DNA of 64,000 nucleotides from Basidiobolus meristosporus CBS 931.73 (taxonomy: Eukaryota; Fungi; Basidiobolomycota). The stretch is from NCBI GenBank assembly GCA_002104905.1, contig MCFE01000272.1, positions 1-64,000 of the forward strand, written 5' to 3'. This document shows, piece after piece, positions 1,930-39,273 of this stretch (the stretch's first letter is position 1; every line of letters starts with the position of its first letter). The position numbers were made by a program, and so were the translations under genes. The notes beneath the pieces were generated by a model. It saw only the letters and a list, made by a program, of their open reading frames with translations, was not told the DNA's origin and did not search any database.

Positions 1930-4900
1930 CAGCAGCTTGTAATTAGTAACCCTCTTAAAAATCTTATGATGGGATCACAAAGGTGTTTTGCTAATTTTAC
2001 TGCCAAATAAAGTGATGAACTTTGCAGGATTTTATTGTTGCTGTGACAATAATTGCATGGCATTGTTGTGGTCTTATTGTGCTCCACAACTATTTTATAT
2101 GGACCCAACAGGCCAGGACATCCAATTGCCTTATATGGCAGAAAACTTGACGGTATCTCAATGGCCCTATAGCAAGACTTGGATGGCATTATAATGGCAG
2201 TATGGTGGCCTACAGCTAGTTCTGTATAATGATACTGTACTAATTTACCAAATGGTATATCCTTTTTCTACCTCCTCTAGTGCAATTCCTATATTCCACT
2301 GTGGATTTACCCATATTTATTTGCTTACCCACTACTACCTTGGGCATTCCACATATAGTTTGAATAAAAAAAAACTATGGCCTCCTGCTTACTAACCTCT
2401 ACAAATGTGCACACCTGCCGCAATTGACATACTTCTATCACTGTAATTTAAGGCTTTTTAGTGTGATACTTGCAAAGTTGCCATATACCTTGTACTGCTG
2501 GTAACATATACATCTTGCAAACATATGCTTGGCTGTTACCACTTCTGGCATGAATACCTCCTGAATATCCACAAAGAACTTCTTGGTATCTGGCCAATAT
2601 ATCCCTTCTCCCTGCTGGATTCTAGTCCCCCTTATTGGTGTGCTCTGGCTTTTGTTTGTGCAAATTCCTTATTGAATGGTGTAGAAGTTGGCTTGTGACC
2701 ATGTGAAATCTGGCATATCTTGGTAGAGCTTTCCTGATAAAATTAGTTGCTTGTTGCACCCAACCCAACTTGGCATCACTTAACTGATTAACCACACATT
2801 GGAGCTGCTTAGCTTCCTAATGCCATAGGCATATGTGTCTCCATGTGCACATTTGTCCTCAGTATTTTCCAACTCTTTCTGGCTGTCCTTCATGTGCCAA
2901 TTCATCACATCCATGGTGGACTTGAAGGTAATATTCTTGATGAGACTGGGATATGGTAGTACCTGCAACTTGACTCATCTTCCTATCTCCCCACACATCT
3001 GCTCCATAGGAAACTGCAAAAAGGTAAAGCAAGGCCCAACATTCTCCACACACCATGCAAGATAGAACAGAGAATGGATACAGTAGTGGCAGAAATCTAC
3101 GCATTCAGCTTTATGTTTGTAGTATAGCTGCTCAAATCATGCTACAAACTCTGCACACAACAGCTGTAGATGCATCAAATTAGCATTGGTGATGTGCTTC
3201 TGGATAAGTACTCCTACAATGTCCACAAATGACTCCCAATGCTTCCAATATACTCTTGGTAGGACCAGCTTCAGAATGCCACTTAAAAAAAAACATATCC
3301 TGCTCATCCAGTGTTTGCATTTGTATTGTTGCATATGCAAATGAATATTAATTGGAGCTGTGAGAAGTACTTAGGGTAGCAGATACTCTGCAATATCTTG
3401 CCAATTCTTTCAAATTTCTCCGGTATCTCAAAGGGCTCATTCAGCTTTAAATGCCTCATGTACAACTAGGTCATCAGTATAGGGATATTGTTGAAAAGCA
3501 AATGCATTGCTCCCAGTGGAAATCTTTTGCTCCAGCAGATACCCTCTATCTTGAATATCTCCAGTCTCCAATTGATTCCATATTCTGGCCAATGGGTTAT
3601 AGCTTGTCTACTTTGCTGCAATTGCATGCTGACTTCTATACATTCTCTCAGTAGAAAGATGATGTTCTTAGCACAGGTGCTTGGGTAATAATAATAGACT
3701 TGTTCCGTTGGATAGTGCCACATTGAGCCATGAGTGCCAAATAGTGCCATAGTGTGCCTGAGAGTCATAGCAGACCTAAACTTGGCCACAAAGTGTGGCA
3801 TATAGTTCTCCATATTCGTGCAAAGCAACCCCTGTGTTTCACCTAGTGTGTGGGAGAAAATCAATTTTTTAACCTTTTTTTTAGGATCAAAATTGTGCAT
3901 GACGTAAAAGAGCACAGACAGACTGAAGATATGCATCTGGTACATAATACCCATGGCACTCTAAATCTAGCCCCACAGGCTTGTAGCATGTCACAAAAAT
4001 GCATGGCACTATCTTGGTCCACTGGTACTATCTGGCACTATATTTAAATATTAGCCCTAAAGTAGAACCTATACAAAGCACTTATAGTGCCAGATAGTAC
4101 CAGTGGACCAAGATAGTGCCATGCATTTTTGTGACATGCTACAAGCCTGTGGGGCGAGATTTAGAGTGCCATGGGTATTATGTACCAGATGCATATCTTC
4201 AGTCTGTCTGTACTCTTTTACGTCATGCACAATTTTGATCCCAAAAAAAAGGTTAAAAAATTGATTTTCTCCCGCACAGTAGGTGAAGTACAGGGGCTGC
4301 TTTGCATGAATATGCAGAACTATATGTCCCACTCTGTGGCCAAGTTTAGGTCTGCTATGACTCTCAGGCACACTATGGCACTATTTCGCACTCATGGCTC
4401 AATGTGGCACTATCCAACGGAACAAGTCTAGTGTGCATGAGTTTTGGAATAAATTCCCTGGATCTCACACATTTGACAGCAATACCATCCATTGTGCCCA
4501 AGAAACCTGCTATCTTACTGATGGCTGAGGTATCTCCAATGCAGATAATAATACATGCTTTTACATGATGGCCATTTACTCTTATCCTGCCTGAAAGCAT
4601 ACAAAGTTCATCCAGCAATGGATACAGGTAGTTATCCAGGTTGGACAGTGATTTAGGCCCAGAAACCAGTGAGACTACCATCAGATTATTGCTCTGATAC
4701 CATAAGATGGGCAACAGATTCAGATTGATGAGAATCAGCAGCTGGCAGAATTTGCTGGTAGAGTACTTGTTTAATGAGAATTCAGCAAATACAAAAGCAA
4801 AGGCATGATCATACATACCTTCAAAGTTGCCCTTGCTTCTTAGCTGTTTGTAATGATTGCCATCAAATATACTGCATATATATGTGCTTGATTGATACTG

Positions 4901-5891
4901 AGTGTGGTGCTGTAAAGCTTTGCAATATTTGTTGGACTGCATCAGCTCCCTCAGACAGGGTATAACCAGAATATATTGTGAGTGTGAAGGATGTTTTCCC
5001 TTAATGGTGGTGGATTCCTGACAATTTTGACACATTGCAATGGTAGCATTTTTGGATGTGAATGCCATGCAACTTTTAACACATGCAGAAACAGGACAGT
5101 CTCTGCATCTTATGTTCCCAGCCTCATGATGGTTGTCCACTTGTACCATGTATATGGTAAGTTGCATCCTGGTATGATTTTGGCAAGAAATAGTAATAAA
5201 TCCGCAAAGCCCCCATTAGTGATATTAGCGGAAATGCGCCACTTCTCTAGCCACAACATACATCATTCACCAGTAGATGGATTACTGGGCTCACTTGGCT
5301 CCATAAAGTATCCTTGGCATCCATTTCAATGGGTGTTATCTCATTGTATATGGAAATTTGACCAGGCTCAAATGTGGCACTATTGTTAGGGGAGATTGGC
5401 TCAAAATCCATCAGTGACCCTTATTTGTCAGAGCTATCACTTTGCATGCCATATTCAGAAGGCTGAGGTGAGCCTAAAGGTGTCACAAACCTACCTGACA
5501 CAGTTTGCGCAAGGTGACAAAGACAGCCAGGTGCCAATATAGAAGTATCAACTAGCCGGCAAGATGATGTTGGTGCAGTAGTGACCAATAAATGGTCAAA
5601 TATGACTTGTGTGGGAAAGCATTGGCTTTTATCCTTGTAATACTTCCTATGCTGTCTGTGTGCTTCAAGGCTGAGAGGCTTGCCACAATAGCCACATGTT
5701 CTTTTTTCTCATCTCTTATGGCATTGAGTCAAAGTAGTCTTGTTCATGGGGCAAACAGTCTGACCTTCAACAATGTAATGCTATTATATCACTTTTAGGT
5801 CAATACTGATATGAACTTAAGACAGTCTGGTATTTGAGACATGGCACCTACATGAATGTAAGATTCAATAATGACCTGCCATAGTAAGCAT
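1930..5891 (-). pseudogene. CMC/EnSpm transposase (Transposase_21/tnp2-like), frameshifted and interrupted by the palindromic MITE; ends approximate
   Basis: Fragments LILINLNLLP..YQ..NLMVVSLVSGPK...YLYPLLDEL, CIGDTSAISKIAGF, MHLLFNNI and HSL..LAW.VENVGP match tnp2-family motifs. Confidence 0.85.
3696..4429. mobile_element. Fold-back (palindromic) MITE, copy 1: arms 3696-4042 and 4083-4429, 40-bp spacer
   Basis: Long inverted repeat with termini AGACTTG...CAAGTCT and flanks AAT/AGT. A 3-bp TSD restores the length of the uninterrupted transposase at ~9370-9395. Confidence 0.92.
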
Positions 5892-5969: not shown

Positions 5970-7923
5970 ATGCCGCCAAAAAATAAAGCAAAGTTGTCTG
6001 GTTCCCAACTAAGCCCCACTGCTGATGGCAGTGGAAGAACAGATGGACAACAGCTTGCTTTGACATTGAGTGCAACAAGCAGGGCTACATCCAAAAAAGG
6101 CCCTGTGGACAGTGTGCCCATTGAAGGTCATAATGTGGACTCCTAAGGCTCTCAGTTAAGTAGGCAATTGAGAACTTCAGCAGAGCCACAAGCTGAACAT
6201 TATGCTCAGGCGGATGAGATTGTAGCAAGCACAGTATCCTCAGTTGGAGGCCAGCATGTGGCCATGATAACATCACCACCACCCATATTAGCAAGTATGT
6301 TGTCAGCTCATACCAAAGCATTAATGAAGCAATTAGGTGGAGTGGCTGATAGGATATATGCAATGGCCCAGAGAAATCAGGAAATAGTCCAGAAGCAGGA
6401 TGAGTGGATAATACATGTAGAGCAATCAATATCCCAGGTAGAGAAAGCGGTATCTTTGCTGCAAAGAAGCAACTCAAGTAGCTCAATGTCACAGCCAAGA
6501 ATTGGGCTATTTCCTGATGTACCAGCAGAGGAACACTGTACTGTCTTTGAAGCACAACAACAGTGCCCAAAGATAAAGCCCACAGGAAAATCTACCAAAG
6601 AATGGGAGGGAGACAATGTGGTGTTTATACCAAAGCTTAAAAATCAAAAGACATTGAAGATCTGTGAAGCCATTGAGTGCAATAATGAAGAGTGCGCTAA
6701 TATTCAAGAGGCCATCAGAAGTCTGGCATGCCATCACCTCAAGGCTGGCATACCATGGGACCATACAGAACTTAAGGCCAAGCAGAATTCACTTAACTTG
6801 TTCCATGAGCACTATCCTGGATTCAAACGGGCAATCAGATTTTGGGCCAGCATTGGTATGCTAAGAGAGTATCTTAAGAATAGCAGAAACTATCAAAGGC
6901 AGAAGAATAAGGGTGCCATGGCTAAAAACCAGCGGCTTCCTCAAGAGCCTGTTACAAGCAGCACCAAAAGCTCTAGACAAGCATCAACAAGATGTCAGGT
7001 AGCTGGCCGAGTGCCAATTAGGGACAAGCAGGCAGACATGGATGCACTGGCACCACATTTAACAAGGAAAAAGCGTAGTACCACACTGGAAGAACCCAGT
7101 CAAAGAAGCAGTGAAGGACCTGGCAGTGATAAAAACCAGCTGCTTTTACAGGAGCCCATCACAACTATGGTGAGGGCTCAAAACAAGTGGAAAAGGAATG
7201 TCAGGTTGCCAGAAGAGTGCTGGCAAGGAACAATCAGGCCAAAACAGATGCATCAGAGCCAATTTAACTAGGAGAAAACATAGTTCTTTACAAGAAGCAT
7301 TCAGACAAAGTAGCAGTGAAAGACCTGACAGTGATAAAGGAAAAGGTAGAGGGAAAAATGTCTACACAATCCTGAGACAGGGAGGCATGCCAAGAAAACT
7401 GCAGTTCTTGTCAATTAGTGCTGTAAGCCAGGAACAGACTGAATCCCATCATAGCCAAGGAGAATTGCCAACAAGAAAACAGCTGTTTTCACAAAAGTTG
7501 GAAGCACATCCAGCTTAGCTACACTCCAGCCAGGTAGATGAGTTTGCAGAAAAAGGCAATTCATCTGGCACAGCCTCCAGATCCTCTGCTGCTGACAGAG
7601 TGGAGATCCCACTGACAGACACAGCTACAATGTCAAGAGCTGGAAAGACTATCACAATGCCTTCTGTGGAGTTTTGGGACACTAATAGGCACACCAAGAG
7701 GTTGCAGCACTTCTTGAAGAGTAGTGCCCAAGAAAATGCACTGGAATATTGCAAGGATTTATTGCAACGGCTGGCAGATGAGGTGTCCAGCCTTGCAGTG
7801 TTGGCTGAAGACCAGGACATGTGGGAACCAATGAATGAACAGTGGCATAAAGCTGTTGGGTCCTGCCAAAGTTGTGGAGCCAGAGCGTTACAGCAGAAAC
7901 ACTTATTGAGTGGTGGATTTTAA
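5970..7923 (+). pseudogene. CMC element second gene (ORF2, TnpA-like position), divergent from the transposase; unknown protein of about 650 aa
   Basis: ATG at 5970 (MPPKNKAK) is in frame with ORF 6168-7271, and the gene continues after a frameshift to 7923. Homologous copies lie at 10303-12190, ~26090-27540, ~33520-34250 (-) and ~52730-53760 (-). Confidence 0.75.
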
Positions 7924-8366: not shown

Positions 8367-11300
8367 GTAGAGGTTGGCTTGTGACCAAGAGAAATCCAGC
8401 ATACCTTGGTAGAGTTTCCTAATAAAAATTAGTTGCTTGTTGCACCCAACCCAACTTTGCATTACTTAACTAATTACCCATGCATTGAGGCTGCTTAGCT
8501 TCTTAATACCATAGGCATAGGTGTCTTCATGTGCACCTCTGTCCTCAGTATTTTTCAACTCTTCCTGGCTGTCCTCCATGTGCCAACTCATTACATCCAT
8601 GACAGACTTGAAGGTAATATTCTTGATGAGATTGGGATACAGTAATACCTGCACCTTGACTTATCTTCCTATCTTTCAACACATCTGCTCCATAGGAAAG
8701 TTTCCAAAAGGTGAAGCAAGGCCCAGCATTCTCCACACACCATGCAAGATGGAGTAGAGAATGGATACAGTAGTAGCAGAGATCTAGGTGTTCAGCTTTA
8801 TGTTTGTAGTATAGCAACTCAAGTCCTGTCACAAACTCTTGGCACAACAGCTGTTGATGCATCAAGTTGGCATTGGTGATCTGCTTCTGGATAAATATTC
8901 CTACAATGTCCACATATGACTCCCAATGCTTCCAATATACTCTAGGTAGGAATGGCTTCAGAATGCCACTTGAATAAATACATATCTAGTTCATCCAGTG
9001 TTTGCATTTGTGTTGTTGCATGTGCATATGAGTATTGATTGGAGCTTGTGAGAAGTATTTACAGTAGCAGATACTCTGTAATATCTTGCCAATTCTTTCA
9101 AATTTCTCCGGTATCTCAAAGGGCTCATTCAGCTTTAAATGCCCCATGTACAACTAGGTCATCAGTATAGGGATATTGCTGAAAAGCAAATGCATTGCTC
9201 CCAGTGGAAAGCTTTTGCTCCAGCAGATACCCTCTATCTTGAATATCTGCAGTCTCCAATTGATTCCATATTCTGGCCAATGGGTTATAGCTTGCCTACT
9301 TTGCTGCAATTGCATGCTGACTTCTATAGATCCTCTCTGTGGGAAGGTGATGTTCTTAGTGCTGGTGTTTGGGTAATAACAATGTATGTGAGTTTTTGAG
9401 TAAATCCCTTGGATCTCACACATCGGCCAGCAATACCATCCATTGTGCCTGGAAAAACCTGCTTTTTACTGATGGCTGTGGTATCATCCAAATTGCATCC
9501 TGGAATGATTTTGGGAGGAAGTAGTAATGAATCCTCAAAGCCCCCATTACTGATATTAGTGGAAATGCACCACTTCTCTAGCCACAACATTACATTATTC
9601 ACTAGTGGATATATTACTGGGCTCACTTGGCTCAATAAAGTATTCTTGACATTTGTTTCAACACGTGTTGTCTCATTGCATATTGGGAATTCACCAGGCT
9701 CATACATGGTACTGTTGTTAGGGGAAATAGGCTTACAGTCCATCAGTGAACCTTCTTTGTCAGTGCTATCACTCTGCATGCCATATTCAGAAGGTTGAGG
9801 TGTGCCTAACAGTGCCACAAACCTGCCTGACTCAGTTTGCGTAAGGTGACAACAATGGCCAGGTGCCAATACAGCAGTATCAGCTGGCCAACAAGATAAT
9901 GTTGGTACAGTAGTGACCAATAAATGGTCAAATATGACTTATGTGGGAAAAAAACTGGCTGTGATCCTTGTAATACTTTGTATGCTGTCTGCAAGCTTCA
10001 TGACTGAGAGGCTTGCTACAATAGCAACATGGTCTTTTCTCTCTTCTCTTATGGCATTGAGTCAAAGTAGTCTTGTCCATGGGGCAAACAGTTTGACCTT
10101 CAACAATGTAATTCTATTATATCACTTTTTGGTCAATACTGATGTGAACTTAAGATAGTCTTGTATCTGAGATATTGCACCTACATGAGTATAGGATTCA
10201 ATGATGACCTGCCATAGTAAGCATTATAAATAAAGCTGTGGCACTGCATACACATGCATATGTACAGCTATTTCCCCTTTGGTTTGACTCACTTACATTT
10301 AAATGCCGCCAAAAAAAAAAGCAAAGTCATCTGGTTTCCCACCAAACCCCACTGCTGACAGCAGCAGAAGAACAGATGGACAACAGCTTGCTTTGACATT
10401 CAGTACAACAAGCAGTGCTACATCCAAAAAAGGCCATGTTAACAGTATGCCCACTCAATGTAATAATGCAGACTCCTCAGGCAAATGAGAATGTAGCAAA
10501 TGCAGTACCCTTAGTCAAGGACCAGCAGCCAGCCCTCATAACATCACCATCACCCATATTAGCAAGTATATTATCAGCTCATACCAAAGCATTAATGAAG
10601 CAATTAGGTGCAGTGGCTGATAGGATATATGCAATGGCCCAGAGAAATAAGGAAATAGTCCAGAAACAGGATGAGCCATTAATACGTGTATCAATATCCC
10701 AGGTAGAGAAAGCACTATCTTTGCTACAAAGAAGGAACTCAGGTAGCTCTAGGTCACAGCTAAGAGTTGAGTCATTTCCCAATGAAACAGTAGAGGAACA
10801 CCATACAGTCTTTGAAGCATAACAACAGTGCCCAAAGATAAGTCCCTCAGAAAAGCCTATCACAGCATGTGAGGGATAAAATGTGGTGTTTATACCAAAT
10901 CCTAAAAATCAAAAGACATTGAAGATCTGTGAGGCCATTGAGTGCAATAATGAAGAGTGGGCTAATATTCAAGAGGCCATCAGAAGTCTAGCACGCCATC
11001 ACCTTAAGGCTAGCATACTATGGGAACATCCAGAACTCAAGGCCAAGCAGAATGCACTTAACTTGTTCCATGAGCACTATCCTGGATTCAAATGGGCAAT
11101 CAGATTTTGGGCCAGCATTGGTATGCTAAGAAAGTATCTTAAGAATAGCAGAAACTATCAATGGCAGAAGAATAAGGGTGCCATGGCTAAAAACCAGCAG
11201 CTTCCTCAAGAGCCTGTTACAAGCAGGGCCAAAAGCTCCAGACAAGCATCCACAAAATGTCAGGTAGCTAGCAGCGTGCCAATTAGGGACAAGAAGGCAG

Positions 11301-12460
11301 ACATGGATGCACCAGCACAACATTATTAAGGAAAAAGCATAGTATCACTCAAGAAGCACTCAGTCAAAGTAGCAGTGGAGGATCTGGCAATGATAAAAAC
11401 CAGCAGCTTTTATAGGCACCCATCATAACTACAATTGAGAGCTCACAACAAGTGGAAAAGCAACATCAGGTTGCCAGGAGAGAGCCAGCAAGGGACAAGT
11501 AGGCTAAAGCAGATGCGTCAGAGCAGAATTTATCAAGGAGAAAACATAGATCTCTATAAGAACCACTCAGACAAAGTGGCAATGAAAGACCTGGCCGTGA
11601 TGAAGAAAAAGGTAAAGGGGAAAATGTCTACCCAAGCCTGAGACAGGGAGTCATGCAAAAAAAACTGCAGTTCTTACCAATTAATGCCACAAGCCTAGAA
11701 CAGACTGAATCCCATCATAGCCAAGAAGATTTACCAACAAGAAAGCAGCTGTTTTCACAAGAGTTGGAAGCACAACCAGTTATGCTACACTCCAGCCATG
11801 TAGATGAGTTTGCAGAAAAAGGCAATTTGTCTAACACAGCCTCCACATCCTCCAGAGTTGACAGAGTGGAGATTCTACTGACAGACAAGGTACAACATCA
11901 AGAACTTGAAAAACTATCATGATGCCTTCAGTAGAATTTTGGAACATTAATAGGCACACCAAGAGGTTGCAGCACTTCTTCAAGAGCGGTGGTCAAGAAA
12001 ACACACTTAAATATAGCAAGAACTTATTTTAATGACTGACAGATGAGGAGCTTGACCTTACAGTGCTGGCTGAAGACCAGGACATATAGGAAGCAGTGAA
12101 TGAACAGTGCCATAATGCTGTTGGGTTCCCATAAAAGTTGTGGAACCAGAGCATTACAGCAGAAATACTTATTGAGTGGTGGATTTTGATGGAGTTACTT
12201 GTTGAGAATGGGGTTGGGCTTAATGTTAGTGTAGGGTAGAGGGACTTGTACAGGTCAATACAATTGGCAATTGAGGTACAACTGAAGCTTCAATGGAAGT
12301 AAATAAATTTGTATGCATGAAAAGTAAGAGAAATGGTTGAGTCAGGAAGTAATTTCAATTGTCTCTGGATGGTGTCCTGACAGGATCAGTACCTCTTAGT
12401 CACAGGACTTTAACTTTGTGATGGCCTTTTGATGAGGTTATTACAATAATTTTCATAGGG
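8367..12460. mobile_element. Second CMC unit lacking its left ~840 bp, with an internal deletion in the transposase near 9485; ORF2 copy at 10303-12190
   Basis: Starts at sequence equivalent to ~2685 of unit 1, is collinear with unit 1, and ends TTCATAGGG. Confidence 0.85.
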
Positions 12461-16498: not shown

Positions 16499-16786
16499 GT
16501 CAGCTAATGATAGTAGTATACTGCTCAAATCCTGTTACAAACTTCTTGCATAAAAGCTGCAGATGTGTCAAGTTGGTATTGGTAATCCACTACTAGATAA
16601 CTATTTCTACAATATCAACATAAGACTCCCAGCACTTGCAATGTACTCTTGATAGACACAACTCTGGGAGGCCACTAAAATAACTACATATCCACTTCTT
16701 CCAGTCTTTATTTGTATTGCTTCATATGCATATGAATATTGATTAGAGCCAATGGAAAGTACTTTGTGTAGCAGATTATATATGAT

Positions 16787-17520
16787 AGACTTGTTCTGTT
16801 GGATAGTGTCACATTGAGCCATGAGTGCCAAATGATGCCATAGTGTGCCAGAGAGACCAAGTGAGCCTATACTTGGCCACAGAGTGTGAAACATAGATCT
16901 GTATCTTCTTGCAAAGCATCCCCTGTGTTTCACCTATGATGCAGGAGAAAATCTATTTTTTGACGTTTTTTTGTGGATCAATATTGTGCAGGATGTGCAA
17001 GAGCACTAGAGGATTGAAGATATGCATCTGGTACTCAATACCCATGGCACTCTGAGTCTAGCTCCTGTGGCTTGTAACATGTCGCAAAAATGCATGGCAC
17101 TATCTTGGTCCACTGGTACTATCCGGCACTATATTTAAATATTAGCCCTAAAGTAAGATCAATACAAAGCACTTATAGTGCCAAATAGTACCAGTGGACC
17201 AAGATAGAGCCATGCATTTTTGTGACACGTTACAAGCCACAGGAGCTAGACTCAGGGTGCCATGTGTATTGAGTACCAGATGCATATCTTCAATCCTTTA
17301 GTGCTCTTGCACATCCTGTACAACATTGACCTAAAAAAAAAGGTCAAAAAATGGATTTTCTCCATCACAATGAGTGAGACATAGGGGCTGCTTTACATGA
17401 AGATGCAGATCTATGTTTCACGCTCTGTGGCCAAGTGTAGGCTCACTTGGCCTCCCTGGCACACTATGGCATCATTTGGCACTCATGGCTCAATGTGACA
17501 CTATCCAACAGAACAAGTCT
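16787..17520. mobile_element. Fold-back MITE, copy 2: arms 16787-17133 and 17174-17520, 40-bp spacer
   Basis: Same length, termini and spacer as copy 1; flanks GAT/AAT. A 3-bp TSD restores the length of the uninterrupted site (~3380-3400). Confidence 0.92.
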
Positions 17521-19375
17521 AATATCTTGACAAGTCTTTTGAATTTCTCCAGTGTCTTGAAGGCCTCATTTAGCCTGAAATGACTCATATACAACCTGGG
17601 CATTAGTATAGTATTGAAATATTGTTGAAAAGTAAATGCATTGCTTCCAGTGGAGAGCTTTGCTCCAACACATATCCTAATCTAAAATACCTCCAGTTTC
17701 CAATTGATTCCATATTCCAGCCAATGACTTATAGATTGCCAACTTTGCTGCAATTGCATGCCAACTTCTATAAGTTCTCTGTCAGAAGATGATGTTCTTA
17801 GTGGTAATGTTTGGGTAATAACAATGTGTGAGTTATGGAATAAATCCATTGGATCTCACAAATTGAACAGCAATACTCTGGATTGTCTCCAGAAGTAGCT
17901 GTCTATCTTGCTGATGGCTGGGGTATCTCCAATGCAAACAACAATATGCACTTGTATATGATAGCAAGTTAGTAGTATCTCACTGGAATACACACATAAA
18001 TCAATCTGTAATGGATACAGATATCTGTTCAGGCTGGATGGCAATTTAGGCCCAGATATCAGTGAGACTACCAACAAACTTCTGCTCTGATACAGTAAGA
18101 CAGGTAGCATCTTCAGGTTGATGAGAATCAGTAGCCAGCTAGATTCACTGGTAGAGTGCTGATATAACAAAAATCCATCAAGTGCCAAGAGAAAGGAATG
18201 GTCATACATACCTTCAGAATAGCTCTTGCTTCTTAGTCACCTGTAAAGTTTGCCATCATGTATATTGCAAATGTTGGCACTTCATTTATGCCAAGTGTGG
18301 TGTAGTGGGGTGACAGTGAAACCCACTGACAGATGTGCTCATTCCCTTATTTTCTACTTCCCTATATCTCTACTACACTTATTTTAGTTTTATCCCATTT
18401 GTCTTACCCAATCAGTGCTATCCCATAAGCCGGTTGACTATCACACCTGCTTACCTTATTGCATATGTTACCCCTCACTTTATGTAAGATTACTAGCTAG
18501 AAGTACTTCTATATTAGGCAAGTACCTGCACCAGTACCCATGACACATGATCAATCCATGTCACCATCCCTACAATTTCCATACCATATATGGTATCCCC
18601 ATGTTACACAGGTTTCAGAATACTGATTCCTGATTGGTTGGATGTGCTGTGCCTCTTAGAACCTTCCAGCACCTACTTAGAACATTCTTAGGTCATTCTG
18701 ATGTCATTAAGATTTCTATTGATCTCCGGAACCTTCTGGAACACCATGATTAATAATCACTTAGCCAGTGAGAAAAGTATATAAGGGAGGCTATCCCTCT
18801 ACAATAAATCATCATCCCTTTTATCAATATACCAACTTGTTGATTAGTGTGATCACTGCTACCTGCTGCTACCTGAACTTCCAACCCCAGACCACAGGAC
18901 ACTCCCAGGAAACCACGCTGACAGCCAACTGACCTTGGAGGCACTACTTGTGAGGAATACTCAGAGTAGGTATCTTTTATTATATTTGATTCTTTCCCAA
19001 GTTTGTTCTTGTACAGGCAAAGATACTTTTCTGTCTTTGTAACTATTGACCACAGCTGCATTCTTATCAAGTCCCTGCTGGTGGAGTTTACAGCTGTTTT
19101 GACTTTGGAAGCTTTAGTACATTGTCATCTCAAAGGACGCTGAACCCAGCACATACTTTTGTTAAGACACCAACTAAGTTGGGGATTGTAGCTCAATAGT
19201 TTTCCCTTGACAAGCTTGTGGCTTTATTCCCCTTCACATTAGATTGGAGACAGAATCCAAGTATTCCTAGCAAGCTTTTGCCAGAGGTTATCGCACCCAG
19301 TGAACACCCCACACACAAAACACTTGAAAAGTGTTGAACGTATCTCTCCCTTGGACCTATACACCACCACATATT

Positions 19376-19392
19376 TGGCACCCAATGTGGGG
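19376..19392 (+). promoter_or_regulatory. Primer-binding site, tRNA-Lys(CUU)-type with two CpG decays
   Basis: TGGCACCCAATGTGGGG versus the known Lys1,2-type PBS TGGCGCCCAACGTGGGG; 4 nt downstream of the LTR. Confidence 0.8.
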
Positions 19393-19511
19393 GTTTCATA
19401 CAAGCTCCCTATGACCCAACAAGATTTACCTGAATATTTGAGCTGTTATCCACCTATTGAAAAGAGACTACCAATATTACCAAGATTACAACACCAACCT
19501 ACCTGCCCAAA

Positions 19512-22500
19512 ATGAACTCTATGCCATTACCACTTTCACATGGAGCCCCACAGTTTGATGGAAAGAATGTGGAAAGCTTCATATTCAAATGGGAGAAGCT
19601 CTGCAAGATGTGCAGCCTATCTGAACAAGAAATGGCTGAAGAATTCCCCTACTACTGCACCAATAATATTACCACTAAGCTTCTCAGACAAGGAGACATT
19701 CTCACTGACTGGGCCTTAATGAAGACCTACCTACAGACCAAGTATGGTAGACCCCATATATACTATGGAATTGAAGACCTCAGGCACTTTGGAAGAACTG
19801 GACTTTCCAAGCTACCACTTGAAGAGTTCATTCAACAGTATGAAGATATGGCCAAGCCACTCCTAGAGTCCCAGGCTATAACTGAGTTTACCATGACACT
19901 TTACCTTGCACAAGGGCTTCCCCAGGACTTGGCAAGGAAAGTTGACTTTCATGCAGCCAAGGATGACAAGTCTGGCATTCCTTGCTTTGCAGAGATGAAA
20001 CGTGTTCTCCTAGAGGCAAAACAAACTTCTACCTTTATGAGACTCCTGACATCTAATCTGCCAGACCAGTCAACCAAGGAGCCAAGGAGTGCTGCTGCTG
20101 ACAATCAGACCTACACTACTGACAGAATTGACCAACTTGCTGAACAGCTACAAAAACTAGCCCTCAAGATTAATGGCTTGGCTGAGGTTGCTACTGAGGG
20201 ACAAAGAGCTTTGCCCAGGCACTGCATCTGGTGTGACTCTACTCAGCATGCCAGACAAGAATGCTCAGAGCTTAGTCAGCTACTCAGAGAAGGAGCAGTA
20301 CAGTTTGATGCTGATGGAATGCTTGCTGACAAGGAAGGAGGAAGGATTCCCACTAATTTCCAAAGAGGAGGAATGAGAGCCCTTTTCCAGAAATCTGACT
20401 CAGCAACCAGAAAGATTACTGCTGATGCCCCTATTGGGACTCATAAAGTGAATCCAAGCAGCCCTGACAACAGACAATACAAAGTTGATGCCTTTGCTAC
20501 CAAAAGACACCTCCCTGAAGAACCTGCCAAACCCATCCTTGGAAGACCACTATTTGAAGAACCTGAAGTTGTTATTGACAAGAGACCTAGTATGCTGCCC
20601 ACCCAAGATCCATTGCCTCACATTCAGATGACCTCAAAGATAGCAAGCTACTCAAGCCCTCAACTGATTACTGAGAAGCTGCTGAAGCAGAACCTCACTT
20701 TGTCAATTGGAAAAATCATGAGTGTATCCCCATCTGTTAGGAAGACCTTTGATGAGCAGCTTAGAACAAGACAACAAGCTGTTGAACATATGGACACCAA
20801 TATAATTCAGACAAACCATGAAGACCACCAAAAGGACAACGACACTACTGAATATAAGACCTTTTACTCAGTTGCAACTGCTGTGGTGAAAGGATATATA
20901 TATGATGACCCTGTTGACTGCCATATTGACAGTGGCTCAGAGATTTGTGTTATGCCGCTAGACTTCTGGAAGACACTTAGAAGCAAGGAGCTACTGCCTG
21001 TTGATAGAGATATTGGATGGAACTTGACTGATGCAAACTCAGGATCTAGTCCACTCTACGGTGTAGTGCACAAGTTCCCTATTGAGGTACAAGGAATCAA
21101 GGTCTGGCTTCCCCTCTTCATCTGCCAGAAGGCAAACTTTGACCTTCTGCTAGGTAGACCATGGGAAACCAGTACTAAGGCTACAACTACCAACTATTCC
21201 AATGTGTCAGTATGGTACACCATACAAGGATCCAACCCAGGACTACAGTCAACCTTCTGTGGTGTAACACACAACAATAAGAGGACACATACTGCTTGCC
21301 AGAAGACACATCTTATTATGGAAGAAGATGAGGAGCCTGACAATATACACCCCAACATTTGGAGCCGCTCATTAGGTATACAGGAGCAGACTGCTATGGT
21401 TTGGACAAAATACAAGACAGTAGAACAGAAGATTAGACCATCACTTACACCTTTGACTGATGGATCCCAACCTGCTGATTACATTAGACCGCCAGAAGAA
21501 ACACCAGATGATACACAACTTACACCTGAGAGACTTAAGCAACTTATCATTGGTGATGGAAACCTAACACCAGAGGAGACACTATTATTCAAGGAGACCT
21601 TGAAAAGGCATGATAAGATCTTCTCATATAATGACAAGGAGATGGGACTCTTAAAGACATTGGTTGAAAAACCCATCAAGATTCATACAGTGCCCCACAC
21701 ACCCTGGTCATTTAAGCCTTACCCACTGCCCAGAGGACTCCAAGCTGATGTGCATGACCTACTTAAGAAGAAGATAGAAGCTGGTATCCTAGAACCTTGC
21801 CATGGACCCTATGCTAACAGATGGTTTGTGACCAAAAAGAAGAATGGAAAGCTCCAATTCATTCAAGACATGCAACCTGCAAATGCTGTCACTATCAGAG
21901 ATGCTGCTATACCTCCATCTATTGATGACTTTGCAGAAAGCTTTAGTGGCCACTCCATCTACTCAACATACAATCTCTACTCAGGATATGACCAGATTCC
22001 CCTTGATGAGACATCAAGAGATATGTTTGCACTACAGACACCATTTGGACTATTAAGGATGGCAAGACTCAGCCAAGGGGCTACAAACTCCGTGGCTCAG
22101 TTCCAGAGATGCATGGTGAATGTGCTATACCAGTTTATACCTGAGAAACCTGCTGTCTTTGTTGATGACATAGGCATCAAAGGACCAAAAACCCGGGACA
22201 CCACTGAAGTCATGCTTGGAGTCAGAAACTTTGTCTATGATCATATTTCAGACAATGATGCCATATTAGGAGCCATTGAAGAAGCTGGACTCACCATCAG
22301 TGGTGAGAAAAGCAGCTTTGGTGTATCAGAGATATCCATTGTTGGACAAAAATGCAATACCTTTGGTCGCTCACCTGGAGATTCCAAGACACAAAAGATA
22401 TGCAGCTGGCCTACCCCCACAAATCTAACACAAGCTTGTGGCTTTGTGGCAGCTTGAGGGTTCTTTAGGATCTGGATCCCAAGATTTTCTGAGATAGCAG

Positions 22501-22985
22501 AACCAATCTACCAACTACAGAGAAAGAATACCCCATCTATCTGGGGAGAAGAGCAAGAAGAAGCCATGCAATTACTGAAAGAGGCCTTAGTATCTCCACC
22601 AGTTCTAAGACCTCTTGACTATCAAAACACTGAATGCCCACCTATTTTGACAGTGGATGCAAGCCCTATAGGAGCTGGAGCACTACTTGGACAAGATGAT
22701 GAAGACGGCAACCGCTATGCCTGCAGATATGAGAGCTGCCTACTCTCACCCAGAGAACAAAGATACTCACAGATTAAGAGAGAGCTACTAGGAGTTGTGA
22801 AGATGCTGAGGAAGCTGAAGTCACAACTCTATATGACACATTTCATCCTGGAGACAGATGCCAAGCCACTTATAGGAATGATCAACAAGCCTGACCTACC
22901 TGATGATGCCACAAACTGATGGATGGCATGGCTGAAAATGTTTGACTTTGAGGTCAGACACATCCCTGGCAAGACAAATGTTTGC
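19512..22985 (+). CDS. gag-pol: Gypsy A gag-pol polyprotein: 981-aa open frame, then RNase H through two in-frame TGA; truncated before integrase
   Basis: CIWCDSTQHARQEC (CCHC knuckle), HIDSGSE (protease), QGATNS..VFVDDIGIKGP (RT), VDASPIGAGA..ETDAKPL (RNase H). Confidence 0.93.
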
Positions 22986-24720
22986 TTTGACCCAAGTTCA
23001 AAGCTGAGAGGGGTGTGGATGTAGTGGGGTGACAGTGACACCCACTGACAGATGGGCTCATTCCCTTATTTTCTACTTCCCTATATCTCTACTACACTTA
23101 TTTTAGTTTTATCCCATTTGTCTTACCCAATCAGTGCTATCCCATAAGCCGGTTGACTATCACACCTGCTTACCTTATTGCATATGTTACCCCTCACTTT
23201 ATGTAAGATTACTAGCTATAAGTACTTCTATATTAGGCAGGTACCCGCACCAGTACCCGTGACACATGATCAACCCATGTCACCATCCCTACAATTTCCA
23301 TACCATATATGGTATCCCCATGTTACACAGGTTTCAGAATACTGATTCCTGATTGGTTGGATGTGCTGTGCCTCTTAGAACCTTCCGGCACCTACTTAGA
23401 ACATTCTTGGGTCATTCTGATGTCATTAAGATTTCTATTGATATCTGGAACCTTCTGGAACACCATGATTAGTAATCACTTAGCCAGTGAGAAAAGTATA
23501 TAAGGGAGGCTATCCCTCTACAATAAATCATCATCTCTTTTATCAATATACCAACTTGTTGATTAGTGTGATCACTGCTACCTGCTGCTACCTGAACTTC
23601 CAACCCCAGACCACAGGACACTCCCAGGAAACCACGCTGACAGCCAACTGACCTTGGAGGCACTACTTGTGAGGAATACTCAGAGTAGGTATCTTTTATT
23701 ATATTTGATTCTTTCCCAAGTTTGTTCTTGTACAGGCAAAGATACTTTTCTGTCTTTGTAACTATTGACCACAGCTGCATTCTTATCAAGTCCCTGCTGG
23801 TGGAGTTTACAGCTGTTTTGACTTTGGAAGCTTTAGTACATTGTCATCTCAAAGGACGCTGAACCCAGCACATACTTTTGTTAAGACACCAACTAAGTTG
23901 GGGATTGTAGCTCAATAGTTTTCCCTTGACAAGCTTGTGGCTTTATTCCCCTTCACATTAGATTGGAGACAGAATCCAAGTATTCCTAGCAAGCTTTTGC
24001 CAGAGGTTATTGCACCCAGTGAACACCCCACACACAAAACACTTGAGAAGTGTTGAACATATCTCTCCCTTGGACCTATGCACCACCACAGTGGTACTGT
24101 ATAGCTTTGCCATAGTTGTTGGACAGTATTAGCTTCTTCAGATGGGGTATTACCTTTGGTGCTTTATAACTTCTCAAAATTTGTTGGACTGCACAAGCTT
24201 CTTTACTTATGGTATTACTGGAGTATATCCAGATAGTGAAAAATATTTTCCTCCTATGGTGGTGGACACCTGACAGGTTGGACACCTTGCAATGGTGGCA
24301 TTTTCAGATGTGAACACCATACAATTGTAACACATGCTGGTAATGGGAAGGTCTCCAGGTCATATGTTGCCAGCTGCATGACAGTTTTCTGTTTGTAGCA
24401 TGTACATGGTAGCTTGCATCCCAGAATGATTTTTGCGATAGGTTGTAGTAAACCCTCAGAGCCTCAAATACTGATAGATGTAAAAACCAGCCATTTCCCT
24501 AGCCAATTCATTACATCATTCACCAGTAGTTGGATTACCTGGCTTACTTGGCTCCAAATAATATCCTTGGCATTTTCACCGTGGGCATTGACTCATAGCA
24601 TATTAGGATCTTACTGGGTCCATTCAGAGTACTGCTGTTATGGGAGAGAGGCTTGCAATCCATCCATGAGCCTTCTTCTTCAGAGTACTCACTGTGTAAG
24701 CCATTTTCAGAAGACTGCGG

Positions 24721-25400: not shown

Positions 25401-28309
25401 ATTTATTTATACTCACTTGACTCCATAAAGTATCCTCACTATTGCTTACCATGGGTGTTGTCTCATAGCATCATGGGATTTTGCTAGGTTCACGCCAAAT
25501 ACTGTTGTTAGAGAATATAGGCTCACAATCCATATGTAGCCCTCTTCTTCAGAGCTATCTTTGTGTGTGCCATATTCAGAAGGCTGGGATGAGCCTATAG
25601 GCATCACAAACTCATCTAACTCAGTTTGCACAAGGTGACAAGTATAGCCAGTAGCTGTGATGGAAGTATCAAGTTGCCAGCAAGATATTGTTGGTACAGT
25701 AGTGACTGGTGAATGGTCAAATATGGCCTTTGAGGCAAAACTCTTGCCATGATCCTGGGGATACTTCCTATTCTGTCTGCATGATTTGTGGCTGCAAGGC
25801 TTGCTACTATAGCCACCAGGCCTTTTTCTCTTCTGTTATGGCTTTGAATCAAAGTAGTCTTATCCATGGGGCAAACAGTTTGATACCAATCAATGTAATG
25901 CTATTTTATCACTTTTCTGTCAATACTCATGTGAGCTGAAGACAGTCTCGTAGTTGAGACATTGCACCTAAATCAATGCAAGATTCAATGCTGATTGGCC
26001 ACAGTAAGCATTATAAGTAAGCTTGAGGCACCACATACATATATAAATGTAACTATATTTCCCCTTTGGTTTGACCAACTTCCATATTCATACCATCAAA
26101 AAAAAGCAAAGGTGACTGGTTCCCAATAAAAACCTACTGCTGACAGCAGTAGAAAAATGGATGGACAACAGCTTGCCTAGACATTCAGTGCAACAAGCAG
26201 TGCTACAACCAAAAAAGGCCTTGTGGACAGTATACCAATGAAGATAATAATGTGAACTCTTCAGGATCTCAATCAGGTAGCCAATTGGGAATCTCTGTGG
26301 AGCTGCAAGCTGACCATAATGCTGAGGCAGATCAGAATATAGCAAGTGCAGTACCTTCAGTTGCAGACCAGCAAGTGGCTGTTATAGCATCACCACAACC
26401 TATATCAGCAAGTGTGTTGCCAGCTCATACCAAAGCATTAATGATGCAATTAGGTGCAGCAGCTGATTGGAAAGATGCAAAGTCACAGAAAAATCAGCAA
26501 ATAGTCCAGAAACTGGATGAGCGGATAATACATGTAGAGCAATCAATATTTAAGGGAAAGAAAGCAGTAACTTTGCTGTATCAAAGAAACTCAGGTAGCT
26601 AAATCTCACAGCCAAGAATTTAGCTATATTCCAATGTAACAGCTGCAGAACACCATACAGGCTTTGAAGCAAACAGCAGTGCCCAACAATAAAGCCCACT
26701 TTACAGCTTATCAATGCATGGGAGGGAGAAAATGGAGTATTTTTATCACAGCCCAATAATCGAAAGACATTGAATATCTGTATAGCTATAGATTGCTATG
26801 ATGAAGAGTATGCTAATATTTAACAGACTGTAAGTGGTCCAGAATATCAGCACTTTTAGATCAGCATAACACAGGACTATCAGGAAATTGAGGCCAAGTA
26901 GAACAGGCTTGACTTGTTCCATGAGTATGATAGGAAAGTATCTCAAGAATAGCAGAAACAATCAAAGGCAGAAGAACTAGAGTGCAATAGCTAGGAACCA
27001 GCAACTTCCCCGAGAGCCCTTTACACGCAGGGCCAAGAGCTACAAATAAGTGTTAACAAGACATTGGGTAGCTGGCAGAGTACTAATAAAGAATAAGCAG
27101 ACCAACATAAATGCACCAGCACTACATTCTCCAAGGAGAAAGTGTAGTTGTACTCAGGAAGCACTCAGAAAAGTAGCAGTGAAAGACCAGGCAGAGCTGA
27201 AGGAAACTGTAAAGGGAGAAAATTCTATTCAAGTCAAAGGCAAGGAAACATGAGAAAAATGCTGCAGCTCTTGCCAATTAATGCCATAAGCCTGGAACAC
27301 ACAGAATCCTTTTGCAGCTAAGTAGAAATACCCACATGAGAACAGCTGTTTTCACAAGAGTTGGAAGTGTGGCCAGTAGAGCTGCACTCTACAGAGGCAG
27401 ATGAATTAGCAGAAAAAGGCTATTAGTGTACCACAGCCTCTATGTCCTTCATTGCTGGCAGAGTGGAGATCCCACTGACAGACAAAGTAGCAACATCAGG
27501 AGCTCTAAAGGTTATCACACTGCCTTCAGTGGGACCTTTCAAAATTAATAGGCACACCAATCTGCATTTTGATCCTCCAAAGTCTGTAGTTCCTCCTTTC
27601 AAACCTCTCCTTTGTAGATAAGATGTCTAAGTATTAAAAGAAAAGAATAGGTTGTAGCACTTCTATTGCAATTTTTGAGGACTATTTTGAATATTCGATG
27701 TATCCATTGTATAGACTAGCAAATGAGGAGCTAGACCTTGCAGTGCTGGCTGAAGGCCTGGATGTGTGGGCACCAGTGGATGAGAAGTTGCATAAGGCCA
27801 ATGGGCTCCTGCCAGAGTCATGGAACCAGTGCATATAGCAGAAATACTAATTGAGTGGTAGATTATGATGGATCTATTTGTTGAGTTTGATTTGGGCATA
27901 ATGTTAGTGCTAGGTACAGGCACTTGTATAAGTCTATACAATTGCAGCTGAAGTACAACAAAGGCTTTGAAGGAAATGAATAAATTTGCATGCATATAAA
28001 AGTAAGCAAATTGGATGAGTCATGAAACAAGATGTTTAAGATAGAGACAAAAGTCAAATAACGTACACAAAAGTAAGAGGGGATTGAGTGTCTGGGATCA
28101 GAAGGTCAGAGAGTTGGCAGGTGACTAGTCAAAAGCCACTTGTGTATTGCTTTGATGAAATATTTTGATCAAGTTTGATGTGAAATCAGGGGTTCAATTT
28201 TTTTTTATGGTCTTTGGAGTGTTTTAATGGGATGAATACCTTTTAGTCATAAGAATTTAATTTTGTGTTGTCCTTGGCCAGGTTCATCACAATTTTTTTT
28301 ATAGGGCAG

Positions 28310-28487
28310 GTATTCTATAGTTACCCATGCAACTATCTTGATTAAAATTTCTTTGTATTAGGTGAAAAGATCTTTTTGATGCGCAAAGTGTTTGATGTAC
28401 CAGAGTCAATATACCACATCCAAGTATCATTATTTGATGTCAAACTTACTGCAACTATAAGCAGTTTCACCTCAATTGCCGATTGTA
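28310..28487 (-). pseudogene. Copia protease fragment; a separate Copia gag-start fragment lies at ~27560-27650
   Basis: WYIDSGTS motif in ORF 28342-28536. Confidence 0.7.
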
Positions 28488-28582
28488 TTGTTCTATTGCA
28501 CCATGCCAGAGTGCGCAGCAGAGTCTGTAGTTGCAAAGAACAATAGGCACAATATTGTAGCTACCAGTTAGCAGGATTGCTC

Positions 28583-28951
28583 TGTTGAAATATTGGACTA
28601 TTTGTAATCACTCTGCAGCTAAAAACTTACTTAACAATTCTCGACTAGTCTTGGTCACTGTGAGACTAATTTACAGCTCTAACTTTGCCACTTTCTTCAG
28701 ATCTATGATCTTATGATAATTCCCCTATAGTCAGGATCCAAGTAACACTAATACTAACTATTATGTACTAACCCTGAAACCGTTACAGAATGCTCCTGAA
28801 TATTGAGAAATCCTCCTTACTTAGTGTTACAGCTGTATTACTTCTACAAAGGTATATATACTGAGCTTCTTTATTAATAAACAACAGTTCAACTGTTATT
28901 ACTATTTCTTGAAAAGTTCCTTATATCCAAATCACTTCTTAAATTGCAACA
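28583..28951 (+). repeat. Solo LTR of Copia C3 with 5-bp TSD TGCTC
   Basis: Matches 31338-31706; TGCTC at 28578-28582 and 28952-28956. Confidence 0.94.
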
Positions 28952-29708
28952 TGCTCTTCAACAGTTTGCACTATGTGGGACAATGTGACACACTGTGGCT
29001 CAATCTAACTTCATCAGGCTGGCATGGATGATAGCACCCACTTGTAATGTCTCCATCACATGCACAAATGAATACCACTATTGTGGTAGGTAAAATCTGG
29101 TATTCAGATATGTTTCATAAATGAAAAGGGTAATTGATGATTATCACACTGTCAACTACATTGATACTTACCATTTTGGTCACCATCACTCCAATTGAAT
29201 GGTGTGTCAATGATTGACTGGTCTAAAGTAGCTAGAAGCACTTAGCCCCCATTCAGTGCTTTGACCAATACACACACCACTTAATTTGACATCAAATATC
29301 CCTTTTGCTCTAAAGTGCACACATTGATCTGACATGCATTGACTGAATGGAAGGCACTCTTATGTAGGGTGTTGGCATAGATTGGACCGACATGCACCGG
29401 TGTGCTGGTATTGCAGACAACAGTAGGGAGTCAAGTAAGATGTGCTGGCAAGATCTTAACACAATTGCTTGTGGTCTGTATTTGTCCTCTTGAAGTTCAC
29501 CTTCTGATTCCTCAAGATACTCGCTTACCTTCTGGCTGAGGCTTTGGAACTGTTGTCTTAATGAGGCTTGTGTATATTGCTCTTGGAAGCCACTAAGCTC
29601 TTCAATTATATCACATAGCGCACTAGTCATTTGAGGCAAAAACTTGTTTAAAATCTCTTTGAATCTTATATCATTTTTGATATGACTTACTCATTTGAAT
29701 GGTCTTTT

Positions 29709-30076
29709 TGTTACAAGTCTTGGTATAAGAGTTGTAAAGGAATAGGGAGTTTAGCTAGTATTGTATTCACTAAAACTTGAACTGATTTTTATTGAGGTTC
29801 CAGCAGCTCCTTATATACATTTTGCCAGATCAATAGCTGACTAATTGTATTTCCTAATGTAGGTTGTGGCTGATGACTCATTTGATTGCATCATCATCAC
29901 CCCATAAGATCCTGCTTAATATATCTATTTCTGTCTGATAAGGATCTGCTGGTTCATTTGCTGACTAATACTACTGATTTCATAGATAATACTGATATAC
30001 TGATAACCTAAGCATATATTAAATGATTTGACTAAAAACTAATCCAACTTAAACATTCAAGCAGCAGATCATAACA
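29709..30076 (-). repeat. Solo LTR of Gypsy B with 4-bp TSD TTTT
   Basis: Reverse complement of 43121-43489. The uninterrupted site GGTCTTTTCTCATC is seen at ~39293-39306. Confidence 0.92.
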
Positions 30077-31337
30077 TTTTCTCATCAATTCCATCACTAC
30101 CACTGGGTTTCCTCTTGACCTGTTAGAGGGGACCTATGCCAAGTACAGTGAACTATCAACACCAATCTACTCAAGGAGCTCCCATATTAAGCTTTTTTAC
30201 TATTACATGAGATATTGCCCTACAAGGTTTCATCACACCATCCATGGCAACAAAAGTCCTAGAAGCTTTTGTTCTTAGCTGACAGCAATTGAGTACCACC
30301 TTGCACAGGGTACAAATGATTTAGAACAAGCTTGGAATACCAGTTTCATGAGCTCCAATAGACTTCCATATTCCAGAGTGCTCAGCAACAGGTTCTATGT
30401 AAGGAACATTTCAGTATCTTTCCAGTTAGGAGTAGCAGACCTTTTAGTGGGCAGAGGCACCTTTATTCTGTCAAATCAAAGGCACACAGTGTGAAATTTC
30501 AAGCTCTGTCTGGCATGGACGGTAACATCATATAGTCTAGTGGGCTCTTTGCTGGATGTAGGCATGACAAATCACTCTGGGTAGCAAAGCATCTTAAATT
30601 CAGTAGAGGGGAGAAATGTATGGTAGACTTGGTTCCTATAGGAGAGGATTGTCAGATATTAGGATGTATTACAGCTCATAGTACGCCAAGGTATGATGTG
30701 CTTAGTAGGAAGCAGGAGCTCTACAATGAGGTATTTGATTATTTCAGAGTGAGAGTAGAGCATACACTAAGATAACTAAAGTTTTTTAGCACAGTGGCAG
30801 GTAAACACGGAGGAAAGTCATATACAGGAGAAAATAGCAGTGGGGGTAAAATAGTCAAGCTACTTATTGATGCACAGGATATCCATACAAGAAGATAGCT
30901 ATAGAGAGAAATATGTCAGGAGATTTATGCAGAATAAATAATGCAAGAGTAGCACAGTTCTGAGCCATATATTTAAGACTGAGTAATAATACTAGTAACT
31001 GTATCCTATCACAGACATTGTGGTGAATATTATAGTGTCAGACAGCTCAGGAGGGTGCTAGATCACACAGCACTACAATCAGGCTGGTACTAAGTGGCAC
31101 TATCCTACAGAGCAAGTCTCACAAATAACTCCATCAAAACCACCATTCAAAAGGGATCTCTGCTCTTATGCCTTTTTTGCATAACTTTGGAGGGAACTCT
31201 GTGGCTTTATGCAATTGATCATTTGCTGGTTCCAATATGTCCTAGTATTCAGCCAGCAGTAAAGATCAAGCATCTCATCTGCTGGTCTTTACAATCAATC
31301 CTCCCAATATTGCAGTGCATTTTCTTGATCACTAATC

Positions 31338-36500: not shown

Positions 36501-37668
36501 GAAGAAGACTCAGAACTCACCTTCCATATAACAGAAGAATACCTATCCCAGATGACCTCAAAATCAGGAAAGCTATTACACTTGAATGGAGTAATCAATG
36601 AAGTACCTGCCAAGATCATGATTAACTTGGGAGCATTGCATGAGTGCATGTCAGCACAATTTGCTTTGAAGGCTGGAATTAACTTGGAACCTGCCAAATC
36701 AACTTCAGTCTCAACAACTGATGGGTACACTCACATAATTGACTGTATTACTCAGCTACTGAAGATGAAGATCAATGACTATGAAGAGATCTACAGGCTT
36801 ATATATTTAGGAACTGCAAGTTTGACCTTGTAATTGGGAAAACCTGGCTATTTTGTTGTAATCCTTCAATCAACTGGAGAACCATGCTACTCAGATCCAG
36901 AAAGACACCAAGACCTAAGAGTTATTAGACTTGTTCCATTGTACCATGCCAGGGTGTGCAGCACAATCTGCGGTTGTAAAGAGTGATTGGGCATGATATT
37001 ATAGCTATCAGAAGGCAGGATTGTTCTTAGACAATTTTGCACTATGTAGGACAATCTTGCACACTGTGGCATGATCTGACACAATGAGGTTGGCACGGAT
37101 GATTGTGCCAACTTGTAATATTTGCATCATGTGCGCAATTGGATACCGCTATTATGGCAGGTAAAATCTGGGATTTGGATATGTTTCTTCAATGTAAATG
37201 GGAATAAATGAGTATCACACTATATGCTACACTGATACTTACCATTTTGGTTACCATCACTCCAATTGGATGGTATCTCAGTGGTTAAATGGTCCAAAAG
37301 TATCCTGAAGCTGGCAGCCTCCAATTGGCTCACTGACTACTAAACAAGCTACCTGATTTGCTATCAAATATCCCATTTTGCCCATTGAGCAGGTAAATCC
37401 CTGATCCTAGTGATTGGACAAGGTGTCACAGCTAGCACACAAGCAATTGGGTAGGTGCAAAACAGATCCAATAGCTGAACTGGTATTACAAGTGATGTAT
37501 ATATATGCAAGGTGTTTATTTGTAGGGGCTCTGTCTCAAATGTGAGACAACCTTGATATTACTTATTTCAAAAGTTGATGATCACTGATTTGCAAAGGCT
37601 TAATTTGGATTGCAAAAAAAATGGGTTGTTGGGATCATTACAAATAATAGCAATTCAAAGCAATTGCA

Positions 37669-38860: not shown

Positions 38861-39273
38861 TGAGTTTTGTCTGGGTTGTACTAAAGATTAGTTGAGACTT
38901 GGTATGGGGACCATAGCAACAGATTTGGATACTTATACAGCAGTATATTGGCATCAATTTGGTCTTATATGAAATATATATGAAAACTAATGTGATTGTT
39001 GAATTTTCCATATATTATGCATGATGCATCTTGGATTGCGTTGACACAGATCAGATCATGTCAATTGCAGATATCCTATTTGATTATAGATCTATGAGTA
39101 AAGCATCAATAAAGGTACCAAAGCATCTTTTGCGGATGATTTTTGCAACATAATGATGGGATACATGGCAGTTGATGGAGATTTAATCATTGTGCATTAA
39201 CAATTAGATAAATAACGCAGATTGCGCCAAATCAATTCAAACCACCTCCATATGATCATCCACCAATGTTAAT

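Follow-up and report, generated by a model that had tools for sequence, protein, structure and literature searches.

The window, by which we mean the whole 64-kb stretch of DNA analysed here, is a dense pile of nested repeats. Two copies (n = 2) of a 734-bp foldback element lie in this pile, and these, together with two to three copies of a larger, autonomous-type element, form the evidence base within the window. The foldback copies, their target duplications and the open reading frames (ORFs) next to them are as follows.

3696-4429, no strand given: foldback copy 1 (pal1), with arms at 3696-4042 and 4083-4429 and a spacer at 4043-4082
16787-17520, no strand given: foldback copy 2 (pal2), with arms at 16787-17133 and 17174-17520 and a spacer at 17134-17173
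3693-3695: AAT, left half of the pal1 target duplication, whose right partner (4430-4432) has become AGT through one base change
17521-17523: AAT, right half of the pal2 target duplication, whose left partner (16784-16786) has become GAT through one base change
4373-5167, minus strand: degenerate Transposase_21 (CMC/EnSpm-type; PF02992) ORF of the host element holding pal1
17856-18209, minus strand: counterpart Transposase_21 (PF02992) ORF beside pal2

Both copies measure 734 bp, with a 40-nt spacer separating two inverted arms of 347 nt. The initial annotation had described two insertions that are about 95% inverted repeat; its coordinates proved exact, and the inverted-repeat share was measured as 694 of 734 nt (94.6%). 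The arms are 96% complementary in pal1 and 91% complementary in pal2, and the two copies are 82-84% identical to each other. Both carry the termini AGACTTG/CAAGTCT, and a 22-nt terminus occurs five times in the 64-kb window versus an expectation of zero. Two exact-pattern scans of metagenome contigs returned no match to this 734-bp family. Each arm of pal1 is itself bounded by inverted motif clusters (3712-3750 with 4003-4041, and 4084-4122 with 4375-4413), in which every end holds two ATAGTGCC motifs 29 bp apart and the two ends are 72% complementary over 39 nt. In this respect, a single arm resembles a small element with putative binding sites at both of its ends.

We then compared the flanks of the two palindromes with related sequences in the window, where paralogous empty sites are present because the repeats are so densely nested. 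When the flanks of pal1 were joined, they aligned without gaps across 9084-9491 (91.5% identity) and 17525-18122, where a single AAT stands at 9381-9383 and 17823-17825, respectively. The joined flanks of pal2 likewise aligned without gaps across 8792-9378 and 3094-3671, with a single AAT at 9080-9082 and 3392-3394. These gap-free alignments to single-AAT empty sites indicate that each palindrome insertion duplicated 3 bp (AAT), with one base of each duplication mutated since, and they confirm the earlier proposal of 3-bp, ANT-like target duplications. The 3-bp flanks of the three complete elements in the window, namely pal1, pal2 and the coding element auto1 described below, read AAT/AGT, GAT/AAT and ATT/ATT; all three thus lie at ANT, for which the chance probability is about 7e-4.

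The target sites of pal1 and pal2 are separated by about 300 bp within copies of one host repeat, and the two insertions are therefore independent, as had been claimed; each has its own empty sites. Judging by its ORFs, which match PF02992 with E = 2.5e-07 and 4.5e-07, the host repeat is a degenerate element with a Transposase_21 (tnp2, CMC/EnSpm-type) domain. The initial annotation had both copies interrupting CMC transposase genes; the Transposase_21 ORFs of the host uphold the CMC part of this statement, but the interrupted sequences are decayed copies and not genes. We take the two palindromes to be old, dead insertions in decayed CMC-type transposons. A repeated ORF of 367 aa without a Pfam match was also seen inside the CMC-type host copies (6168-7271, 10415-11329 and 26252-26602), and it may be the second gene of the host element.

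The junctions bear on another possible classification, that is, a Tc1/mariner-type (Stowaway-like) element with GACTTG termini and a TA duplication. All three complete elements read TA-GACTTG...CAAGTC-TA and the palindrome runs one base further outward on each side (T...A), so that the flanks alone would permit a TA duplication. However, an ANT duplication itself predicts a T before and an A after the element, and the junctions of the empty sites lack a TA: the TA model needs a 3-bp gap there, whereas the 3-bp AAT model needs none. In addition, the transposase linked to these termini is of the DDE_Tnp_4 type and not of the Tc1/mariner type. The TA duplication is thus ruled out by the empty sites, and we consider a Stowaway-like identity very improbable. 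Long-read sequencing is known to produce long perfect palindromes artificially, for example through a chimeric fold-back read. The two copies, however, are only 82-84% identical and occupy separate loci, and the arm mismatches, the target duplication and the empty-site paralogues are particular to each of them. An assembly or sequencing artefact is therefore ruled out, its probability being practically nil.

The window also holds coding relatives of the palindromes, with the following features.

36927-40299, plus strand: auto1, a 3373-bp Pangu-type element with coding capacity and AGACTTG/CAAGTCT termini
39274-40158, plus strand: transposase gene (DDE_Tnp_4) of auto1, some 294 codons long and interrupted by one in-frame stop at 39526-39528
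37669-38845, minus strand: second, divergent gene region of auto1, three ORF pieces with no recognisable domain
40251-40299, plus strand: right subterminal repeat cluster and terminus of auto1, with ATAGTGCC-like 8-mers about 10 bp apart
28484-31119, plus strand: auto2, a degenerate, internally deleted Pangu-type copy whose left terminus is mutated

The element auto1 is flanked by a perfect ATT/ATT target duplication (36924-36926 and 40300-40302). Its transposase matches DDE_Tnp_4 with E = 6.5e-16, and both pieces around the in-frame stop are collinear with an intact 294-aa relative (P0001), which was the sole relative obtained from a word search with the 208-aa piece of the transposase. P0001 is 57% identical to the auto1 transposase and contains DDE_Tnp_4 only, with no HTH domain. 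Both proteins show a weak similarity to the IS5 family in NCBIfam (E = 8.6e-15 for P0001), which is consistent with the Pangu clade although not decisive for it, and an Atlas look-up of the auto1 transposase gave generic DDE_Tnp_4 clusters only. Since its transposase gene contains an in-frame stop, auto1 cannot be the current driver of the family.

The second gene of auto1 is represented by pieces that yielded no Pfam match at E <= 0.1 above noise and no match in the Atlas; the partner protein had been called "Myb-like", a label that these searches fail to support. A homologous piece lies in auto2 at 29310-29639. The right terminus of auto2 is the best match to the palindrome ends (a 35-nt match), and a further left-end fragment of a Pangu-type element is located at 47959-48488. 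As a side observation, auto2 contains a nested short-repeat insertion (29709-30076), and this repeat is also found in inverted form at 43180-43495 and 50184-50499.

These features were compared with the definition of the Pangu group, which is part of the PHIS (PIF/Harbinger-ISL2EU-Spy) superfamily (Han et al. 2015, PMC4482050). Pangu elements have an ANT duplication, terminal inverted repeats (TIRs) starting with AG or GG, a length of about 3.5 kb and two ORFs, of which one encodes a transposase without other domains and the second lacks motifs (PMC4482050). In our window, a 3-bp 5'-ANT-3' duplication was found for pal1, pal2 and auto1, and all termini read AGACTTG and hence start with AG. The two-gene partner of the palindromes, auto1, is 3373 bp long (about 3.4 kb) and has a short transposase with DDE_Tnp_4 only, without an HTH and with IS5 affinity, as well as a second gene that is motif-less but fragmented. 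Every testable feature of the definition was thus found; the Pangu-type assignment is based on the duplication, the TIRs, the length and the ORF content. The earlier reading of the palindromes as a non-autonomous, mobile fold-back family of the Pangu/PHIS kind is supported, and its ANT duplications are confirmed by the empty sites.

The 734-bp element also shows what is expected of a foldback-type MITE: it is short (734 bp), it is non-coding, and it has its termini, its motif and its target duplication in common with a coding family. The Pangu survey catalogued transposase-bearing families and states that it may have missed non-autonomous derivatives; a foldback derivative is not described there (PMC4482050). 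Unlike the catalogued, transposase-bearing families, the 734-bp element is a non-coding foldback derivative. From the sequence features, we regard it as a foldback MITE family that is new within the known Pangu group.

How the palindrome arms relate to the coding elements was examined with several types of alignment. The palindrome termini had been said to equal those of the 36927-40299 element, and indeed AGACTTG/CAAGTCT is shared, with identity over 7-11 nt. The outer 26 nt had likewise been matched to the right end of the second copy (the one ending at 31119), and 23-24 of the 26 positions agree. Beyond this, in a sensitive blastn against the coding elements, the palindrome resembled them over nothing but its terminal ~35 nt, which matched the right end of that same copy. 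Local alignment of the outer ~35 nt of the arm with the right terminus of auto2 scored 21, while no shuffle exceeded 17. In turn, the inner end of the arm (~36 nt) aligned with the right subterminal cluster of auto1 with scores of 18 (pal1) and 17 (pal2) versus a shuffle maximum of 13; this match is in the same orientation and begins exactly at the spacer boundary. The 8-mer ATAGTGCC occurs 14 times in the 64-kb window versus 2.2 expected, and all but one of the 14 (13 occurrences) belong either to a palindrome or to the right end of auto1 or auto2. The AGACTTG termini and the phased ATAGTGCC repeats are likely recognition sites.

On the other hand, local alignment with shuffles detected no match between the middle ~270 nt of each arm and either autonomous copy. 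Neither blastn nor tblastn revealed DNA- or protein-level similarity of the hairpin to the transposase or the second gene, and tblastn against these two genes, which gave nothing below E = 0.03, found no protein remnants in pal1 or pal2. The proposal that the element was built from two right ends therefore holds for about 70 nt of each 347-nt arm (outer ~35, inner ~36) and falls short for the unmatched middle of ~270 nt. "Two right ends" is a reasonable origin for both arm boundaries as far as these alignments go, and it would explain only about one-fifth of each arm.

The divergence of the four arms is informative about their history. In a four-way arm alignment, 35 sites had one base on both arms of pal1 and a different base on both arms of pal2 (L1=R1 but different from L2=R2), and the number of arm-specific sites across copies was 0. 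The spacers of pal1 and pal2 are identical at 36 of 40 positions and lie in the same orientation; therefore, the palindrome arose once. Divergence is 4-9% from arm to arm versus 16-18% from copy to copy, which is impossible without homogenisation and thus demonstrates that the arms were repeatedly made alike in the source lineages. In compact form, the 35:0 split of sites demonstrates that the arms of a transposon hairpin have been homogenised. Long inverted repeats are known to undergo such copying from one arm to the other. During the active period of the family, the arms would have been equalised most likely by arm-to-arm gene conversion in place or by repair of a snapped-back hairpin strand during transposition or gap repair.

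A different explanation of the same pattern is that the hairpin was kept by selection, acting on DNA or RNA, via compensatory substitutions and not by gene conversion. The 35 double changes do preserve the pairing between both lineages, and the outer and inner arm ends, which bear the motifs, are the best conserved parts. However, 35 independent compensatory pairs in non-coding DNA are far less parsimonious than arm-to-arm copying, and the mismatches are found in other parts of the arm than the fixed differences, a layout that resembles patchy conversion. We thus find maintenance by selection distinctly improbable and retain copying between the arms. In both copies, arm mismatches cluster at arm positions 100-200 (28 of 45 in total, ~13 expected), and this stretch is poor in differences fixed on both arms, with 6 of the 35. 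The clustering and the depletion together point to patchy conversion or to a local hot spot of mutation. In the left arms, the mismatch-rich stretch corresponds to 3796-3896 (pal1) and 16887-16987 (pal2), with mirror positions in the right arms, and mismatch positions 123, 133 and 156 are common to both copies. Transitions and transversions between the pal1 and pal2 arms are nearly balanced (~29:26), and this comparison of the two copies gave no strong RIP signature in the arms.

Taken as a whole, the data make it highly probable that the 734-bp element is a miniature DNA transposon of the foldback kind, non-coding and with very long TIRs, that was moved in trans by a Pangu-type PHIS element. 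We infer that mobilisation would have been provided by the DDE_Tnp_4 transposase, and probably by the second protein, of a Pangu-type element of the same genome. The transposase would recognise the AGACTTG termini and the ATAGTGCC subterminal repeats as candidate sites, and insertion would occur at A-N-T with duplication of 3 bp. Each arm appears to descend from an autonomous right end (terminus plus subterminal cluster) that acquired ~270 nt of unrelated filler, and this arm unit would then have been duplicated in inverted form around the 40-nt core.

Tourist-type MITEs of PIF/Harbinger are one long-TIR/MITE comparison for such an element. Other foldback or long-TIR elements include FB and Tetris of Drosophila (PMC4079207) and the Tm1 Mutator/foldback elements of root-knot nematodes (PMC3169594). 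The 734-bp element shares with foldback/long-TIR transposons and MITEs that it is non-coding and almost entirely inverted repeat, that its transposase would act in trans, that its target duplication is typical of the parent superfamily, and that its arms evolve in concert. It differs from FB and Tetris, which have tandem subrepeats, in that its arms are unique sequence, and it differs from the other foldback examples in its Pangu-type parent. It is a clean, empty-site-verified, non-autonomous foldback derivative of the little-studied Pangu group, for which the catalogue was built from transposases only.

A question raised by this structure is whether the palindromes could act as hairpin silencers. 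It had been proposed that read-through transcripts would yield a dsRNA of ~347 bp, from which small RNAs would silence the Pangu family, in the manner of Mu killer and MuDR. In maize, Mu killer is a single locus that does not move; a promoter beside it drives its transcription, and its hairpin includes part of the transposase gene mudrA. The predicted fold agrees with the first step of this proposal: as single-stranded RNA, pal1 would form one unbroken hairpin with -634.7 kcal/mol versus -197 kcal/mol for shuffles (z = -55), so a transcript through the element would give a near-perfect hairpin of about 347 bp. In addition, each copy has Transposase_21 ORFs upstream of it on the same strand, and these could supply read-through. 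Furthermore, RNAi core genes are reported in related entomophthoralean fungi (PMC11105155). In plants and animals, moreover, small RNAs are known to arise from the hairpin RNAs of MITEs, examples being plant MIR810-like precursors and human mir-548 from Made1 (PMC3086885, PMC1784062). The 734-bp element is like these loci in that a MITE forms a long, near-perfect hairpin.

The analogy to Mu killer nevertheless breaks down at its defining feature. Like Mu killer, the 734-bp element is an inverted duplication involving a transposon end and could yield a hairpin RNA; unlike Mu killer, a single fixed locus with part of mudrA, it is gene-free and itself mobile. Transposase-gene sequence, and with it any segment of the transposase transcript, was absent from the hairpin by blastn, tblastn and local alignment. 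What the hairpin shares with the autonomous element is only ~35 plus 36 nt of non-coding end sequence, with nothing from either gene, and small RNAs would therefore match only the non-coding ends and not the transposase mRNA. Further points against silencing are that the host ORFs are decayed and that arm mismatches are accumulating in both copies (4% and 9%), as neutral decay predicts. A silencer role is thus speculative, is weakened by the gene-free hairpin, and appears very unlikely to us. The hairpin was also scored against Rfam miRNA precursors, and all scores were below the gathering thresholds (98.8/170 bits for MIR810, 68/139 bits for MIR5512 and 32/100 bits for mir-2511); identity with these precursors was rejected, with the scores reflecting only a generic long stem.

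A more far-reaching version would see the foldback family as an active player, in which a snapped-back strand re-symmetrises the arms at each transposition or gap repair and transcribed copies become dispersed sources of hairpin RNA. Small RNAs directed against the shared Pangu ends would then make the family a mobile, self-renewing trigger of RNAi or chromatin silencing in an early-diverging fungus. We view this combination as decidedly doubtful, and nothing in the sequence requires that the hairpins feed RNAi. If small RNAs were indeed fed by them, the family would lend itself well to studying hairpin-triggered silencing in a natural setting, in a non-Dikarya fungus; since MITE hairpin small RNAs are already well known elsewhere, a positive result would extend a known theme.

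Finally, several observations concern the wider surroundings of the foldback MITE copies. CpG is extremely depleted in the 64-kb window (observed/expected 0.07 at 40% GC), which suggests heavy repeat decay driven by cytosine methylation; the two foldback copies, with ratios of 0.24 and 0.15, are less depleted than the window. An LTR retrotransposon (18301-24108) is inserted in the same decayed CMC copy as pal2. Its LTRs of ~1.07 kb (18301-19371 and 23020-24108) are 97-98% identical, and its gag-pol ORF (19512-22457) encodes 981 aa with RVT_1 and DUF4100. More LTR copies are present near 24721, near 51650 and at 55038-56126. At the left edge of the window, the ORF at 72-650 has a chromodomain at its end (PF00385, E = 7e-14) and, ahead of this, a weak match to a Tf2-type SH3, and it represents the C-terminus of a chromovirus-type Ty3 integrase that is cut by the window start.
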